A stretch of 64,000 nucleotides of DNA from Zygnema circumcarinatum SAG 698-1b (taxonomy: Eukaryota > Plantae > Zygnematophyceae), in contig CM074805.1 of NCBI GenBank assembly GCA_037447605.1, positions 310,001-374,000 of the forward strand, given 5' to 3'. Both the position numbers and the translations under genes were made by a program. Under the pieces are notes generated by a model that did no database searches, had not been told where the DNA came from, and saw only the letters and a list, made by a program, of their open reading frames with translations. Shown here piece by piece: positions 19,738-47,448 of this stretch (position 1 is the first letter of the stretch; each line of letters starts with the position of its first letter).

Positions 19738-21086
19738 GCCGCCGTCACACGTGCGACGCTCCCTGCCCGCTCTCCGCCCCTCCCCTCGGAGAGAGCTGCC
19801 CGCCTCGCACGTCTGAGCAAGATGGGGCGCGGGAGAAAGGATCGAGCGCATGAGGCAGAGAGAAATAGAGCCATGGCGTGACTCGCTGACTCCGTTGAGG
19901 ATGGGAATGATGGCATGATGACTGATGTCAGAGGGCACCACTCGACATCAGCCCCGTCAATGAGGAATGTGCTATTATGCGGTATGATGGGAGGGGCCGC
20001 ATGGCATCTCTGCTCTCCATACAGTGCGTGTATTACATGTTTGTGGCCATGGCTGGCATGGTTTCTCGCATGGCGCGGTGCACGGCTGCAAGCGAAGGAA
20101 GGGCTCGGAATGCAGCATGCAGAGCGAGGGCCGCCACATTTCTTCGTCTCACGGGGCGGAGAAAGTGAGGGAGAGACTTTCGCTGGTACGGGGGGGCAGA
20201 GTGCAGGAGGAGCCAAGGGAGGATCCAGAGGAGAGAGATAGGGAGAGAGGGGGAGGGGGAGGGGGAGGGGGAGAGAGAGGGAACGGGAGACAAAGGAGAG
20301 GGATAGGGGGAGGGAGACAAAGGAGAGAGAGGGAGAGGGAGGGAAAGGAGTGAGAGGGAGAGAGAGAGAGAGAGGACAATAGGAACGCGAGGAGAGAGAA
20401 GCAACACGAAGTAAGAATAACGTGTACTTCTTGTTTTCTTATTTCGTGTCCAATGGAAAAAACAAAAAAAAACGAAAAAAAATTCAAAACGAAAAACGAA
20501 ACGTTTTTTCTTAACGAATTCTGTTGCTCTAAGAAAACAAAGGAGATAAACGAATTTTAAATAGGTAAAAAGTGCCTGCCTTGCCCCCCTAAAGGTCATC
20601 TCAGCTGAAAAAAGGAACCAAAACAGAAAAAAATATCTCTAATAATAAGAATTCAAGTCGGCGTCACCCAAAAATAAAATGAATGAATGAATTAACATAG
20701 ACTCGAACTGAATAAAAGAATCTCTTTAAGAATGAATTGCCCCTCTGAACCATTTCCAGTTCGACCCTTTCATTTCTTTCTCTCCTTCCCCTTCCTTCAC
20801 TCGCTGACCTCCACCCTATCATCATCATCTTTTTAATTATTTTTTTCGGCATGAAAAAAAATTGAAGTATTGACAGCAAACGCTCCCCCTGTTAACCCAT
20901 CTCAGATTTACAAATTCCGCCTTCGGAGCTCCTTAAAAAAAAAAAAAAGAAAAAACCAAACCTAGGCGAACTCCCCACACTCAGCACCGGAACTATATAC
21001 AAACCCAAACCATGGCACATGTCTCCATGTAGCATGTTTCTGCGGCCCTAGAAACCCAAAACTGAACTGAAACTGAAAACTGAAAT

Positions 21087-21824
21087 TTACGGGACCCTGC
21101 ATCCGGGCACCCTCTTGCATTTTCTGATCACCCCAACTCCTCCCTTGCTCCCACATTCGCACACGCGGCATCGGTCTCCAGGCTTCACCACCCCCACCGC
21201 CCCCACTGCATAGAAATACGGACCCCAGTTGGGCCCCGCCGACACGCACAGGGGAACTTGAGGCGCCTCACATTTCCCCAAATGGGTTTTCTCCCCTCCC
21301 ACCACAACGCCCCCCCCCGGCCTCACAATGCGGCAGCTGCTCTGAATCTGGTAGGGGCACCCCCTTCCCACGGTGGTGCCGTTAGCGTTGACGTAGCAGG
21401 GAGGGAGGGGCTCGCAGTCACATGTGGCTCTGTTCTGTCCGCGCCGTTGCGGGTAACTGTTGCATGTGCACAGTTCGCACGTGGCGGGGCCGTACGGGGG
21501 AATGTGCCTCACTCCCACGGCGAAGCGGTAGGGCCCCGCAGTGCAGTACGAGAAGCGGGGGGGCGGGGTGCGGCAGGTTCCATGCAGGAATCCGTTGGAG
21601 GGAACGGCGGAACTGAAGATGCATGCGACGGGGTCGCCGCCGCAGAAGGGAGGGGTCCAGCTGTAGTTCGCGGCGAGCTGACACGGGGCGCCGTTGGGGA
21701 GAGAGGGGATGGTGGAGAGGAGGTGGCGGGAGGCGGAGACGGGGGAGGCGGCGGAGAAGAGGAGGGAGAGGAGGGAGAGGAAGAGGAGGAGGAAGGGAGC
21801 GGCTGCAGCTGGGGGGAAGGCCAT
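21087..21824 (-). CDS. Intronless secreted cysteine-rich protein, copy A (245 aa, 20 Cys), unknown family
   Basis: ATG at 21824, hydrophobic signal peptide ending VSA|SRHLL, 20 Cys in two homologous halves, and a close paralog at 33870-34628. Confidence 0.88.
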   Translation of the reverse strand: MAFPPAAAAPFLLLFLSLLSLLFSAASPVSASRHLLSTIPSLPNGAPCQLAANYSWTPPFCGGDPVACIFSSAVPSNGFLHGTCRTPPPRFSYCTAGPYRFAVGVRHIPPYGPATCELCTCNSYPQRRGQNRATCDCEPLPPCYVNANGTTVGRGCPYQIQSSCRIVRPGGGVVVGGEKTHLGKCEAPQVPLCVSAGPNWGPYFYAVGAVGVVKPGDRCRVCECGSKGGVGVIRKCKRVPGCRVP

Positions 21825-21828
21825 CGCG

Positions 21829-21863
<35 letters not shown>

Positions 21864-22736
21864 TGAGAGAGGAAGAGGCGCGGGGAGAGAGAGTGCAGGA
21901 GTGCGCGTGTGCACTGTAGCACTGGCTGTGGCCAGTGCTATATAACAAGCGGACTTAGTATTAAAGAATCGGTGCTCCTTAATGATGGGATGTGTCTGTT
22001 AACGCGTTTGCAAGGTACTCATTGTTTTCTGTAGGACAGGATCGCCGCGTCTCGAACATTCGCAACGCGTCGACCCGAGGGCGGGCGTTGACTTCCGTGT
22101 CGGTCGTAAGCGCGTGCATGGCCGTCACGTGGCGGCCCGAGAGAGGCTGGAAATTGTTTTGACAGGGCTGCCCGCAGACCTGGACCGTGACGGGGACGGG
22201 GGACCGGGACGGGGACCGGGACCTGCTGACCGGGAAATGCGGGCAGCGGGCAGGACGCCGACGACTGCCGTGCGGCTCGCCATTGGCTGAAAGGCCGCAT
22301 TTGAAAAAAAAAAAAAAATCGAAGTTCTCAGAGATTTATGCTTCCGTCACCTGTGGCTTCCGGTTTGCAGTTTTCCAGTTTTGCAGTTTGTGGTTTGCAG
22401 GAACTTTGCAACTGGCGGAGATCGTCCCGCGGAGGCTTGAGAGTGGAGACACAGAGAAGGAGAGGGAGGGAGAGGGGGAGGGAGAAGGGGAGGGAGACGG
22501 GAAGGGGGGTGGAGGATGCAGGGCGGGGCGGCGGAGGGAAAGGGCGGGGGAGAGGAGGGGAGGGGAGGGGAGGGAGATGGAGGGAGATGCGATCCAGCGG
22601 CGGTGTCTCCCTCACAGCATTGACCTGCGCATGGGAGCAGACAGACAGACAGCGCGCATCTTGTCGATGTTTCATGCAGCAGGCCATGGAGACATCAATT
22701 TAACTGACTGCTGTTAAACTGGATCTCATTTGCATC

Positions 22737-23664: not shown

Positions 23665-24616
23665 ACGCAGAGAGAATCTCCCTCTCTCCCTCTCTCTCTG
23701 TCGCGCTCTCTCTCTCCCCCTCTCTCTCTCCCCCCCTCTCTCTCTCCCTCTCTCTCTCTCTCTTTCCCCTTTCTCTCGCTCGCTCTCTCTCTCTCTCCTC
23801 CTCCCCCTCCCACACCCCCCCTTTCCGCGGACCACTCTCTCCACTCCCTTGCATTCCCTTGCCGCTGTCCCCTTTCTCCTCCCCCCTCCCACCCCCTTGC
23901 CGCTGCCTCCTCTCTCACTCCCCTCCCTCCTCACCTCCTCCAAACACACATTTTTTATGAGTTTCTTTTGGCTCGTTATGGCATTATCAGACTTTTTGCG
24001 AACAAGTGTCAAGTGTCGCTTCTTTGAGGCTTTGAAACTTTACGTTCTCGATTTCCCATTTGTCTTTCTCTTCCCAGTGATGTGCTCCCGCTTGCAAACT
24101 CCCCTTAAAGCCAAGCAGCCGTTAGGTTGATCAGTGTCAATTTAGTTCCAGTTCATCTGCAGTTTTTCACCACAGCCTTAACTCCCAACTGCTGTATCCT
24201 GACTTTTGGGACTATGAAATCACACTCCTGGCCCTTTCGTGTTGCTCAAACCATAAGACAGAGGGTTCAAACACTAAGGTTCTTGGGTCACCAAAAGGCA
24301 GAAGGTGATTGTGTTCTAAGTAGGGATGTACATTTCTACGTCCAAGCAACTTTTAGAGTTTAGATTTCAGTATTAGAACGTTCTAACATCCAAACGTTTC
24401 AGAGTTTTAGAACACTTTTAGAACGGCCGTGCGACCACAGATCTCAGAATTAGGCTACGCCAACCTGAATAGCAACAGCGATGACCTTATAGCCCAGCCG
24501 TACGACCGTACAACTGTACGACTGTACGCCTTGTCCGGCCATCCTAAAAGTGTTTACTCGACTTATAGAAATTTCGATTGGATGTCTAATACGGTAGACG
24601 AAGCTGCGCTTTAAGA

Positions 24617-24908: not shown

Positions 24909-26117
24909 TAATATCAAATCCTTAGTACTAGGGAAATCAAAGATCAAGCATTCGCAACAGAACTGAGTCTATTTCATCAAACTGATGTGCTTAGATCGAA
25001 ACTTCTGCTAAACAAATATCTTCGTACCTCATCGAGCATGTAATTTAGTCAAGGCATAAAATGCATGAATCAATCACAGCTAACCTGCTCAGACTCAGAG
25101 ACAGTGAACACATGGCGACACCCAATTACGCGCAGGCAAAGCCCCAAAAGCTTTCCACTCCTGCCATAAGCCATCTCGTCGCTTTCTTCACAGAGTCAAA
25201 TTTGAACACAGAGGTGGGAGATCAAGGTGATCAAAAAAGTGCTCCTGCATGGCTTGAGCCGACCGACCAACCGAACGAACGATGCAAAATAGGGTTAATT
25301 AAATCCTTGAAGAGCTTGTAATCATACTGTGCTAGCAAAAGGCGCCACTAACTGCAAATCTCCTATATTTCCAACGGAACGCCGCATGTAGCAGCGACGT
25401 GTGACCTGTTCAACTGAATCAAGTAAAATCTAATCGATGTTGCCTTTGAAGCTTTGACTTCTGTGGGTTCTTCAGGGCCCTATGTATGATAACGTCGAGG
25501 TCATGGAAAGACCCACCACTTCAGTGGATGCTGCTTATTGTCTGGTGGAAAATCGAATGTCAAGTCACTCATATTATTGGTCCTACATTCTTTGATCGAT
25601 GAAGAATTACGTCATGAATAAACTCCGACTAGAAACGGAAACCGAACACATTGGAATAGCCACAAGTTGCTTCCACCTGTCTCTGCCTCCTTCCCTCACT
25701 CCCTCCCTCTTTCTAGATCCCTTCATTTGCATCCTTCCCTCCCCCTCCCACCCATCATTCCCCCTGCAACCTCCCTGCCTCTCCTGTGCATCATTTTCTC
25801 ACCACTCCCTCCCTCCATCTTCCCTCTTCCTACAACCCTCCATCCCTTCCTCCTTACCTTTCTCTCCCATCCATCGTTTCTCCACTCCCTCCCTCCATCT
25901 TCCTCCTTGCATCCCTCCATCCCTTCCTCCTTACCTTTCTCTCCCATCCATCGTCCCTTCACTCCCTCCCTCCCTCCCTCCCTCCCTTCCCCCCCCAAAC
26001 CCCAATCATCTACATATCCTCCCTCTGCTCTCCCGTTCTCATGCCGAAGCCAAGGCATTCCCTGCTATTAAGCTTTTCTAACTTATTTCTGCCCTTGAGT
26101 TCAAGAAGTGTGCGTTT

Positions 26118-33034: not shown

Positions 33035-33679
33035 GCCACGTGGCACATAGTCGTCGTGTGGTCCAACCCAAGGCCTTTTCCTCGTGTCACGTCATTCCGC
33101 CACGTCAAATATCTGCTCTCTATTGCCACAGCGAGCCACGTGTCGCCGGTTACTTGCTCGGCCCTTGACCGGGAGCTTCCCGCGGTCACGGTCAGCACGA
33201 CCCGAAACACGACAGCGAAAAAAAAAAAAAAAAATCCCCCAAGCGCATTAGCCGCCGGTGCTCGAAACTTTTTATTGCTACCCTGAGAAACAAGGAAATT
33301 TTGAGGACTGTTCCCGAGCTTGGTTCCGTAGACTGAAGGCGATGCAGTTGAAAGTGAGACCAAAACTGTAATATGTATTGCCTGTCAAAAACATTTTTTC
33401 CCTGCCTGACTGACATCCTCCAATCGGAGCTCGCCGCGAGTCAGGCGTCGCCCGGTCTCGTCGCGCCACGTGTCACCCATCACCGTTCACCCCGAGACGA
33501 GTCAACGTCGCCATGCAGGTCCAAATCACCCTCTTGTCTACAATCAGTATCTACCAAGTCAGAAATCAGGTTATAACCGAAGCAACTATGTATCAACTCT
33601 TTCTTAGGCAGTAACCTTCCCTTTCGGCACCTACAGAAATATTTCCTTCCCTGCCCACCAGTCGCAGTGTAGCACGTGC
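33035..33679. promoter_or_regulatory. G-box/ABRE cluster in the divergent region between AUG5 and Cys-rich copy B
   Basis: GCCACGTGGC 33035-33044, GCCACGTGTC 33135-33144 and 33465-33474, GCACGTGC 33672-33679. Confidence 0.45.
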
Positions 33680-33869
33680 GCTGTCTACTATATTTTGTTC
33701 TATCGTGTCGTTTGCGGGACACTGCCCGGCCCTCTCTCCCTCCCTCTCGCCCCCACCTCTTCCCCCCCCCTCTCCCTGTCTCTCTCCCCCACATCTCTCC
33801 CCCTCTCTGCCTTTCTCTCTCGCCCCCTCCTCTTCCCCCCTCTCTCTCTTGCCCCCCATCTCTCTCTCA

Positions 33870-34628
33870 ATGGCTTTCCCCCCAGCTACAATGACAACCA
33901 CTCCCTTCTTCCTCCTCTCTCTCTTCTCCCTCCTCTTCTCCACCGCCTCCCCCGTCTCCGCCTCCCGCCACCTCCTCGCCACCATCCCCACCCTCCCCGA
34001 GGGCGCCCCGTGTCGACTCGCCGCGAACTACAGCTGGACCCCTCCCTTCTGCGGCGGCGACCCCGTCGATTGCATCTTCAATTCCGCCGTTCCGTCCAAC
34101 GGATATCTGTATGGAACCTGCCGCTCCTCGTCCCCCCTCTCCGGCTCCTATGCCCCCCGCTTCTCGTACTGCACCTCGGGGCCCTACCGCTTCGCCGCGG
34201 GGGTGAAGGGCATTACTCCGCTTGGTCCCGCCACGTGTGAACGGTGCACATGCAACAGTTACCCGCGACGGCGAGGACAGAGAAGAACCTCATGTGACTG
34301 CGAGCCCCTCCCGCCCTGCTACGTCAACGCTAACGGCACCACCGTGGGAAGGGGGTGCCCCTACCATATTCAGAGCAGCTGCCGCATAGTAAAGCCGGGG
34401 GGGGGTGTTATGATGAAAGGGGAGAGGACCCATTTGGGGCGATGTGAGGCGCCGCAGGTTTCCATGTGCGTGTCGGCGGGGCCCAACTGGGGTCCGTATT
34501 TCTATGCGGTGGGAGCGGTGGGGGTTCCTGAACCGGGGAGTGGGTGCAGGGTTTGCAGGTGTGGGAGTAGGGGAGGAAATGCCGTTATGAGGAAATGTAA
34601 GAGGGTGCCAGGGTGCAAGAAAAAGTAA
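33870..34628 (+). CDS. Intronless secreted cysteine-rich protein, copy B (252 aa, 20 Cys), unknown family
   Basis: ATG at 33870, signal peptide, SRHLL, and all 20 Cys aligned with copy A. About 80% amino-acid identity by hand alignment, with a 7-aa insertion. Confidence 0.88.
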   Translation: MAFPPATMTTTPFFLLSLFSLLFSTASPVSASRHLLATIPTLPEGAPCRLAANYSWTPPFCGGDPVDCIFNSAVPSNGYLYGTCRSSSPLSGSYAPRFSYCTSGPYRFAAGVKGITPLGPATCERCTCNSYPRRRGQRRTSCDCEPLPPCYVNANGTTVGRGCPYHIQSSCRIVKPGGGVMMKGERTHLGRCEAPQVSMCVSAGPNWGPYFYAVGAVGVPEPGSGCRVCRCGSRGGNAVMRKCKRVPGCKKK

Positions 34629-35711
34629 AAGCAGAGGGATATGGGGAGTATTTAGTAAAGTCACCTTTAGTGGCAACTTTTGCTGGTACGTTTTAAGGGT
34701 CTATATTTGGGCGGAATGACTATATTTGGCTAAAAATATTCGGTTTATATTTCGGCGGAAATGCGAAGGGAAGAACTGAATTTCGGTCCAACTTACGCGT
34801 TGGGAAAAAGTGAAGAAGAAAAATGAGAAAACAATGGAAACTGGACCTGAAGTCAACGACAGTCAAAGCTGTATTTGTGGGGCGGCGGCATCTACAGTTA
34901 TCAGTTACGGGAGGCGTGAGAAATCGAGGGAAGTGTGGAACAAGACCTATTACTGTTTCAGGAACTGGAGGGGATCTGACTGAACGAATAAAGGAAGATG
35001 GACGGCTTGACAATATTCTCCCTTTTTTTTGCTTTGGCAATCTATTGTTTTTCCTTTCATGAAACTATCTAGTTTACGCTACTAATACTCACTACTTTAC
35101 AGTACCTCAGAGCTGACTTACTCGAAGTAACAAGATTCGTAGGACTTTAACTAGTAACTGAAAGAAGAAGACTCTCTCTCCCTTCTTTATACTCTCTATC
35201 TCTCTCTTTCTCTCTCTCTCTCTCTCCCACTCTCGCTCGTTATTTTTTTTGTGAGCATACGAAGATTTTACTTACTCTGTTCCGAGAAATTTGTCAAATA
35301 AAGGAAGAATTGTGTACATATGTTATCTCTATTGTGCGCTTTGTCTCCTTAGCTCATATAGGGACATTGATCAAAAGGTGATGTTTACAACGGAGGCGCG
35401 TCTTTCCATCCCCGCCACTTCCTGCCTCCTTCCCTCGTCCTCCCCTCCCTCTCTCCTCCCTCCCTCCCTGCCTCCTTTCTCATGCCGCCCTGTAATTATT
35501 TATACACGTCCGGAAATCTACAAGCTTCCGCTGTAAATTGCAATGGTTGCAGCTGAAAAAAAATCAATAGCTGCACTGTTTCCCTCAACGAATCTGAAAG
35601 AATGGCACTACAAACCGTCGGAGACAACGTCTCCAAAAAATGATTTATGAATTTACAAATCTCACCTTTTGATCATTGAATACTCGGATTGTTGTCAGAG
35701 CGATGCTCCCT

Positions 35712-47448
<11,737 letters not shown>

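Follow-up and report, generated by a model that had tools for sequence, protein, structure and literature searches.

Two inverted genes of Zygnema circumcarinatum encode a predicted secreted protein with a duplicated 10-cysteine module, from an unnamed family seen so far only in Zygnematophyceae

We analyzed a 64,000-nucleotide stretch of the Zygnema circumcarinatum SAG 698-1b genome (contig CM074805.1, positions 310,001 to 374,000), here called the window, in which positions are counted from its first letter. On the minus strand, at 21087-21824, lies a complete, intronless coding sequence of 245 codons plus stop (copy A), delimited by its open reading frame and translation and by the end-to-end alignment of homologues. 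A tblastn search within the window recovered a second, inverted paralogue of 252 codons plus stop (copy B; 33870-34628, plus strand; E 2e-119), which was also supported by its open reading frame, by alignment, by dN/dS, and by its position in a tree. The two genes are divergently transcribed, with their 5' ends facing each other ∼12 kb apart. Their products are 76-78% identical and keep all 20 cysteines in both; relative to copy A, copy B has seven inserted residues between Cys 4 and Cys 5.

The DNA similarity between the two copies begins ∼65 nt 5' of the ATG and ends exactly at the stop codon. Its upstream limit falls in a CT-rich 5' leader, (GA/CT)n-rich in copy A (21825-21891, minus strand), which is the sole flank that can be aligned between the copies, as judged from the inverted-repeat arms of the gene pair (21554-21891 and 33803-34140) and from pairwise DNA alignment. 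Beyond the leader and the stop codon, we could not align the flanks (window positions 20900-22100 against 33600-34800). Within the coding sequences, codons 16-75 and 136-165 showed almost no synonymous differences (nucleotide identity 0.91-0.98), and the last 45 codons showed 7-10 synonymous differences per 30 codons (identity 0.67-0.77). This patchy identity looks like the product of gene-conversion tracts or of uneven constraint, and the age of the copies implied by dS is therefore unreliable.

Elsewhere in the window, we observed long TC/GA microsatellites and CT-rich minisatellites at 23677-23797, 20227-20376, 33730-33846, and 25802-25973, several of them within the presumed 5' leaders of genes. 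A tandem array at 36306-36783 repeats a 27-nt unit, rich in GCATGCAT, 17.6 times (93% matches) and also scores as many nested inverted repeats. A 613-codon open reading frame at 42534-44375 on the minus strand matches the start of the ABC-transporter ATP-binding domain (PF00005, E 5e-6) and is likely to represent a single large exon from an ABC transporter gene.

We then followed the gene pair into other genomes. With a two-paralogue profile of copies A and B as the query, we searched 1.84 billion representatives exhaustively by HMM and obtained 16 relatives with E values from 8e-55 to 1.7e-4, most of them matched over their whole length; the same search returned no relative from land plants, other algae, animals, fungi, or bacteria. 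The relatives come from several Closterium genomes, where they are labeled "unnamed protein product" or "hypothetical protein", from Netrium digitus transcripts, from two transcripts recorded under the name of the amoeba Leptophrys vorax and one other transcript, from one JGI metagenome contig (L001), and from three Logan assembly matches, for two of which the contigs were examined (L002 and L003). None has more than a placeholder name (examples are CLOM_g2273 and CLOM_g13242 of NIES-68 and CAI5502591.1 of Naga37s-1), and we found no paper that cites the gene identifiers from Closterium or either of the two run accessions. Leptophrys vorax feeds on such algae, and one of its two members, P0003 (EukProt), is 78% identical to a Closterium protein; P0003 is therefore most simply read as prey carry-over, and prey contamination of this data set, which also holds P0012, is likely. 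Together, the sequence comparisons support an unnamed family that comprises at least 16 database clusters and is so far known from Zygnematophyceae alone.

Other searches added little. A word-based protein search with the single copy A sequence gave no match, not even to itself. When the 12-sequence alignment was used, words from the leader peptide dominated, and members present in the database were missed among the best 8000 candidates that were scored. Started from a Closterium member, the same search turned up nothing but more unnamed proteins of Closterium, and a metagenome locus scan matched 169 patterns without confirming a relative.

In a 12-sequence alignment of full-length members, with identities of 32-46%, all 20 cysteines were invariant, as were eight glycines (G82, G104, G149, G153, G183, G197, G216, and G228); W200, G201, Y205, and a few other residues were nearly so. 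The most conserved motif of the family is AGPxWGPxFY in module 2 (see below). Copies A and B keep every family-invariant residue, and they share with the family similarity over the full length, the leader, the 20 cysteines in register, the Trp/Tyr motif, and two homologous modules. In a maximum-likelihood tree, the two copies are sisters (support 100/99) and fall, with P0001, P0002, and the member on contig L003, in a separate clade (100/99), while Closterium holds at least three subfamilies. The family is kept at low copy number, with several paralogues per genome, and its architecture has been preserved in the Zygnema-like, Closterium, and Netrium lineages. The Closterium and Netrium homologues belong to the same length class, with the same leader, two modules, 20 cysteines in register, and AGPxWGPxFY; like the window genes, they have no Pfam domain or studied function. 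However, the Closterium genes have 5-6 introns, whereas copies A and B have none.

Some members depart from this plan. P0007 and P0021 bear an extra C-terminal six-cysteine tail, which in P0007 (contig L004) is a separate last exon, and some Closterium members have inserts. P0006, an annotated protein of 339 aa from Closterium sp. NIES-54, has three occurrences of the segment that surrounds Cys 5 and the aromatic AVGT motif, which would be either local exon multiplication or an artefact of the gene model.

We considered whether the pair might be non-functional, that is, a chance open reading frame in GC-rich, CT-microsatellite-rich DNA or a decaying pair of retrocopies. Both copies are intronless against the 5-6 introns of their Closterium relatives, and retrocopying is a possible origin of the intronless gene, before the A/B duplication. 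The restriction of the A/B similarity to the coding sequence and ∼65 nt of leader, and the many overlapping open reading frames in all frames at the copy A locus, would also fit this explanation. Exact-sequence look-ups of both copies, from the ATG and from alternative upstream starts, found no record of either product in protein or contig collections. However, P0008 (110 aa, Logan) proved to be a mis-called piece of an intact, 280-residue, single-ORF member at L003:203-1045 (SRR8128908); because that gene had been called only in part, exact look-ups can miss genes of this family, and the missing records of copies A and B may reflect only gene calling on those assemblies. Against decay, both copies read through their 245 and 252 codons without a break, the nearest homologues from elsewhere are likewise uninterrupted and full-length, and the family profile matches from the leader through to the C terminus. 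The dN/dS between the copies, at 0.41-0.50 by three methods, is below 1. We therefore regard a non-functional pair as very improbable: a second intact copy, the 20 cysteines kept, this dN/dS, and 16 homologues with invariant cysteines confirm at the level of sequence that copy A is a real gene under constraint, not a chance reading frame in GC-rich DNA.

The initial annotation had described the mature protein as two homologous halves, each a 10-cysteine module, and our analyses bear this out. The 20 cysteines of copy A span residues 48 to 242. Module 1 (residues 41-140; 21405-21704, minus strand) holds Cys 1-10, with a CxxCxC and an aromatic FAVG stretch, and was delimited from the cysteine map, a profile match to module 2, and a confident beta model. 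Module 2 (residues 141-245; 21090-21404, minus strand) holds Cys 11-20, with AGPxWGPxFY, a CxxCxC finger, and a basic tail, and was delimited from its invariant columns, the hhalign comparison, and weak matches to fibronectin type I (FnI)-like and VWC-like domains. The cysteine spacings run in parallel: 12, 6, 15, 9, 21, 2, 1, 13, and 1 in module 1, and 12, 7, 20, 7, 25, 2, 1, 11, and 5 in module 2. Local alignment of half against half in single sequences was moderate, with z of 3.3 for copy A and 5.4 for copy B (2000 shuffles). The family profiles of the two modules matched each other in hhalign with a probability of 96-97% (E 3e-10), with the first eight cysteines in register.

Gene structure in Closterium carries the same symmetry. 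In the paralogues P0007 and P0016, introns lie between Cys 2 and Cys 3 and just after Cys 4 in both modules; the two loci whose modules mirror each other in this way are L004:8001-10150 and L006:8001-9817. Cys 5-10 of module 2, its finger (see below), sit on one exon, and no intron was found where the modules meet. The matching intron positions in both modules indicate that the module duplication is old and common to the whole family. From the predicted structure, we infer that each module consists of a four-cysteine N-terminal sub-domain followed by a six-cysteine CxxCxC beta-hairpin "finger". With two homologous, all-beta 10-cysteine modules, ten disulfides are probable, as a prediction.

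The N terminus of copy A reads as a Met, a hydrophobic core, and then a stretch of small residues. By sequence reading, residues 1-32 (21729-21824, minus strand) form a predicted signal peptide with a VSA-type cleavage context, followed by SRHLL. All full-length members begin with a hydrophobic leader of the same type, in keeping with the export-type leader first proposed for copy A, and neither the sequence of copy A nor the alignment of full-length relatives showed a hydrophobic C terminus or a retention signal. From the leader, export is predicted for both copies. The predicted mature parts of copies A and B are ∼205-213 residues long, with masses of ∼21.6-22.6 kDa and pI values of ∼9.0-9.3. 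Across the family, the mature pI is 8.65-9.34 in 10 of 12 sequences (7.78 in P0010 and 5.63 in P0012), and the mature mass is ∼21-24 kDa in all but one of the 12, P0012, which has inserts and reaches ∼32 kDa.

The SRHLL stretch had initially been likened to the RxLL processing sites of S1P-type subtilases, a proposal that found no support. In the alignment, RHLL, RELL, or RLL is limited to the closest subgroup, where it begins 1-2 residues past the likely signal-peptidase site, so that the pro-piece would be only ∼5 residues long and subtilase processing is unsupported. The motif is missing from most Closterium and Netrium members, and we do not place the family among S1P/subtilase pro-proteins.

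The initial annotation had also placed an N-glycosylation sequon at the same position of each half. NYS and NGT do both lie five residues past the first cysteine of their own modules, but the sequons vary across members. At this site the family has Asn or Asp, followed in module 2 by the invariant G149, and the third residue is variable. Because Asn/Asp(-Gly) is kept while the third residue varies and sequon positions differ between members, the conserved feature is, by the alignment, an Asn/Asp-Gly turn, not a glycosylation site. NYS and NGT may well be glycosylated in this species.

To what known family, if any, could such a protein belong? Pfam returned no family for the copy A product at E up to 10, no relevant family for any of the 17 aligned members, and no VWC for any of them at E up to 1. 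PDB sequences gave no match, whether searched with the single sequence or with the family profile; a superoxide dismutase appeared at E 1.2 in the PDB search and was set aside as a chance match. With placeholder names for all homologues, these results agree with the initial reading of an unrecognized family.

We modeled the mature part of copy A (residues 41-245) with AlphaFold. The 17-sequence alignment gave a model with a pLDDT of 89 and a pTM of 0.71 (80-89 across five models), and an alignment of the two paralogues alone gave a useless one (pLDDT 38). The better model is all-beta, with fifteen strands and no helix. A Foldseek search of the PDB with it found nothing better than E 0.5, and a structure search of BFVD found no match. 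The top Foldseek rows, all at E 0.5 or above, were FnI modules of fibronectin, mucin and von Willebrand factor (VWF) assemblies, and a collagen VWC domain. Residues 147-201 of the model superposed weakly on the VWF C4 domain and several FnI fingers, and residues 1-50 insignificantly on knottin-type peptides (tachystatins and agatoxin) and colipase. All of these structural matches lie under the noise level, the typical best Z for unmatched models being 7-8. Language-model features ranked VWC, NELL, and pacifastin clusters at 0.77-0.80, within the chance range.

The algal modules, FnI, and the N-terminal sub-domain of VWC would share a small, disulfide-locked stack of beta-hairpins, seen here in a predicted model, with CxC or CxxCxC followed by Gly-rich turns and a closing cysteine, and a conserved aromatic/Gly stretch before it. 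VWC clusters were also the nearest by language-model features (0.77-0.80). However, neither VWC (PF00093) nor FnI (PF00039) matched the sequence of any of the 17 members. VWC packs ten cysteines into ∼60-70 residues, its CxxCxC being formed by Cys 2-4 and a CCxxC lying close to its end, whereas the algal module has ten in ∼100 residues with CxxCxC at Cys 6-8; CCxxC is absent, and the copy A product has no CC pair anywhere. FnI has four cysteines in ∼45 residues, and the corresponding stretch here has six. FnI and VWC are, moreover, domains of animals, and the twin 10-cysteine proteins are algal. On the predicted model, we take the resemblance to FnI/VWC fingers as a lead, not as membership.

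This lead bears on one possible role, that of an extracellular signaling ligand, possibly in conjugation, that would bind a receptor kinase or receptor-like protein. Mating in Closterium uses secreted glycoprotein pheromones together with Cys-rich receptor ectodomains (PMC5736609), and this precedent offers a parallel for a predicted secreted product of glycoprotein size with two sequons in copies A and B. The family is confined to conjugating algae, and VWC-type modules bind growth factors in animals. However, the sequons are not conserved, and a look-up by name, which compared names and not pheromone sequences, found no PR-IP or PR-IP Inducer among the relatives or their clusters; the clusters holding NIES-67/68 genes contain hypothetical proteins only. 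Family transcripts are also present in culture transcriptome assemblies, including that of the amoeba, which fits expression in growing cells rather than in mating only, if the cultures are assumed to have been vegetative and non-mating. A signaling ligand is, on this balance, quite unlikely.

Pacifastin (PF05375) provides another comparison, since the last six cysteines of each module follow the same order, C..CxxCxC..C..C, and a pacifastin cluster was among the weak language-model feature matches (0.77). We found no Pfam match to pacifastin and no pacifastin structure among the fold matches listed, and the loops here, of 21-25 and 11-13 residues, are about twice as long as those of pacifastin. 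Defensins, LTPs, thionins, RALF, GASA, hevein, and STIG1 likewise combine a signal peptide with a basic, Cys-rich mature part, but the algal protein is far larger (∼205 residues, 20 cysteines, two modules) and matches none of their Pfam models, as the initial annotation had held for defensin, LTP, thionin, RALF, GASA, and hevein.

These comparisons touch on a role in defense, in which the protein would be a secreted antimicrobial or an inhibitor of foreign proteases, built on a rigid, basic, disulfide-rich scaffold like those of thaumatin-like proteins, tachystatins, and pacifastin-type inhibitors. A pI of ∼9, the richness in cysteine, and the export leader would all suit such a protein, as would a family that is restricted to one lineage, has several paralogues in a genome, and evolves relatively fast (dN/dS 0.4-0.5), and the shared cysteine order and feature score of pacifastin point the same way. 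Those matches fall far short of significance, however, the loops are much longer than those of pacifastin, and no inhibitor or antimicrobial Pfam family matched in the 17 members. The low copy number, with no large expansion, and an architecture that has stayed stable since the Zygnema-like, Closterium, and Netrium lineages split are atypical of arms-race genes. We hold a defense protein to be somewhat unlikely.

The explanation that we prefer, at a probability of roughly 40%, is that the protein is a bivalent binder outside the cell, retained in the polyanionic pectin/mucilage matrix. We infer this, with low confidence, from the leader, the basic mature part and its mass, the two-module all-beta architecture, the low copy number, the conservation, and the culture transcripts. 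After secretion into the acidic, pectin- and mucilage-rich wall space, the protein would act there as a rigid, disulfide-locked binder with two sites. Each finger would offer one binding face, either the conserved aromatic/Gly patch or an exposed beta-edge, so that one molecule could link two polymers of the wall or mucilage, or two partner proteins. Its net positive charge would anchor it in the polyanionic matrix. A basic, Cys-rich, secreted, lineage-specific, and duplicated protein would fit a defense protein or a signaling ligand just as well.

Among algae, Zygnematophyceae are the nearest kin of land plants, and to our knowledge hardly any of the proteins that they secrete into wall and mucilage have been described. 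Eukaryotic genomes commonly carry orphan families of secreted Cys-rich proteins, and this one is of that common kind, a lineage-specific set; what is new is an unnamed family without a recognizable fold. Nothing so far points to an unusual mechanism. The window genes define a clean, conserved family, probably restricted to Zygnematophyceae, that has a confident predicted structure and no Pfam model, solved relative, or name. Closterium, which has several members, can be edited by CRISPR (PMC5736609), and with a family alignment and a model in hand, the function is directly testable. We think it unlikely that the family represents a new disulfide-rich fold specific to Zygnematophyceae, or an independent, plant-side origin of an FnI/VWC-like finger, serving a trait peculiar to these algae, such as the assembly or cross-linking of pectic wall and mucilage sheath, or adhesion and recognition between cells in conjugation. 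If true, this would add a new class of extracellular matrix or recognition proteins on the lineage towards land plants.
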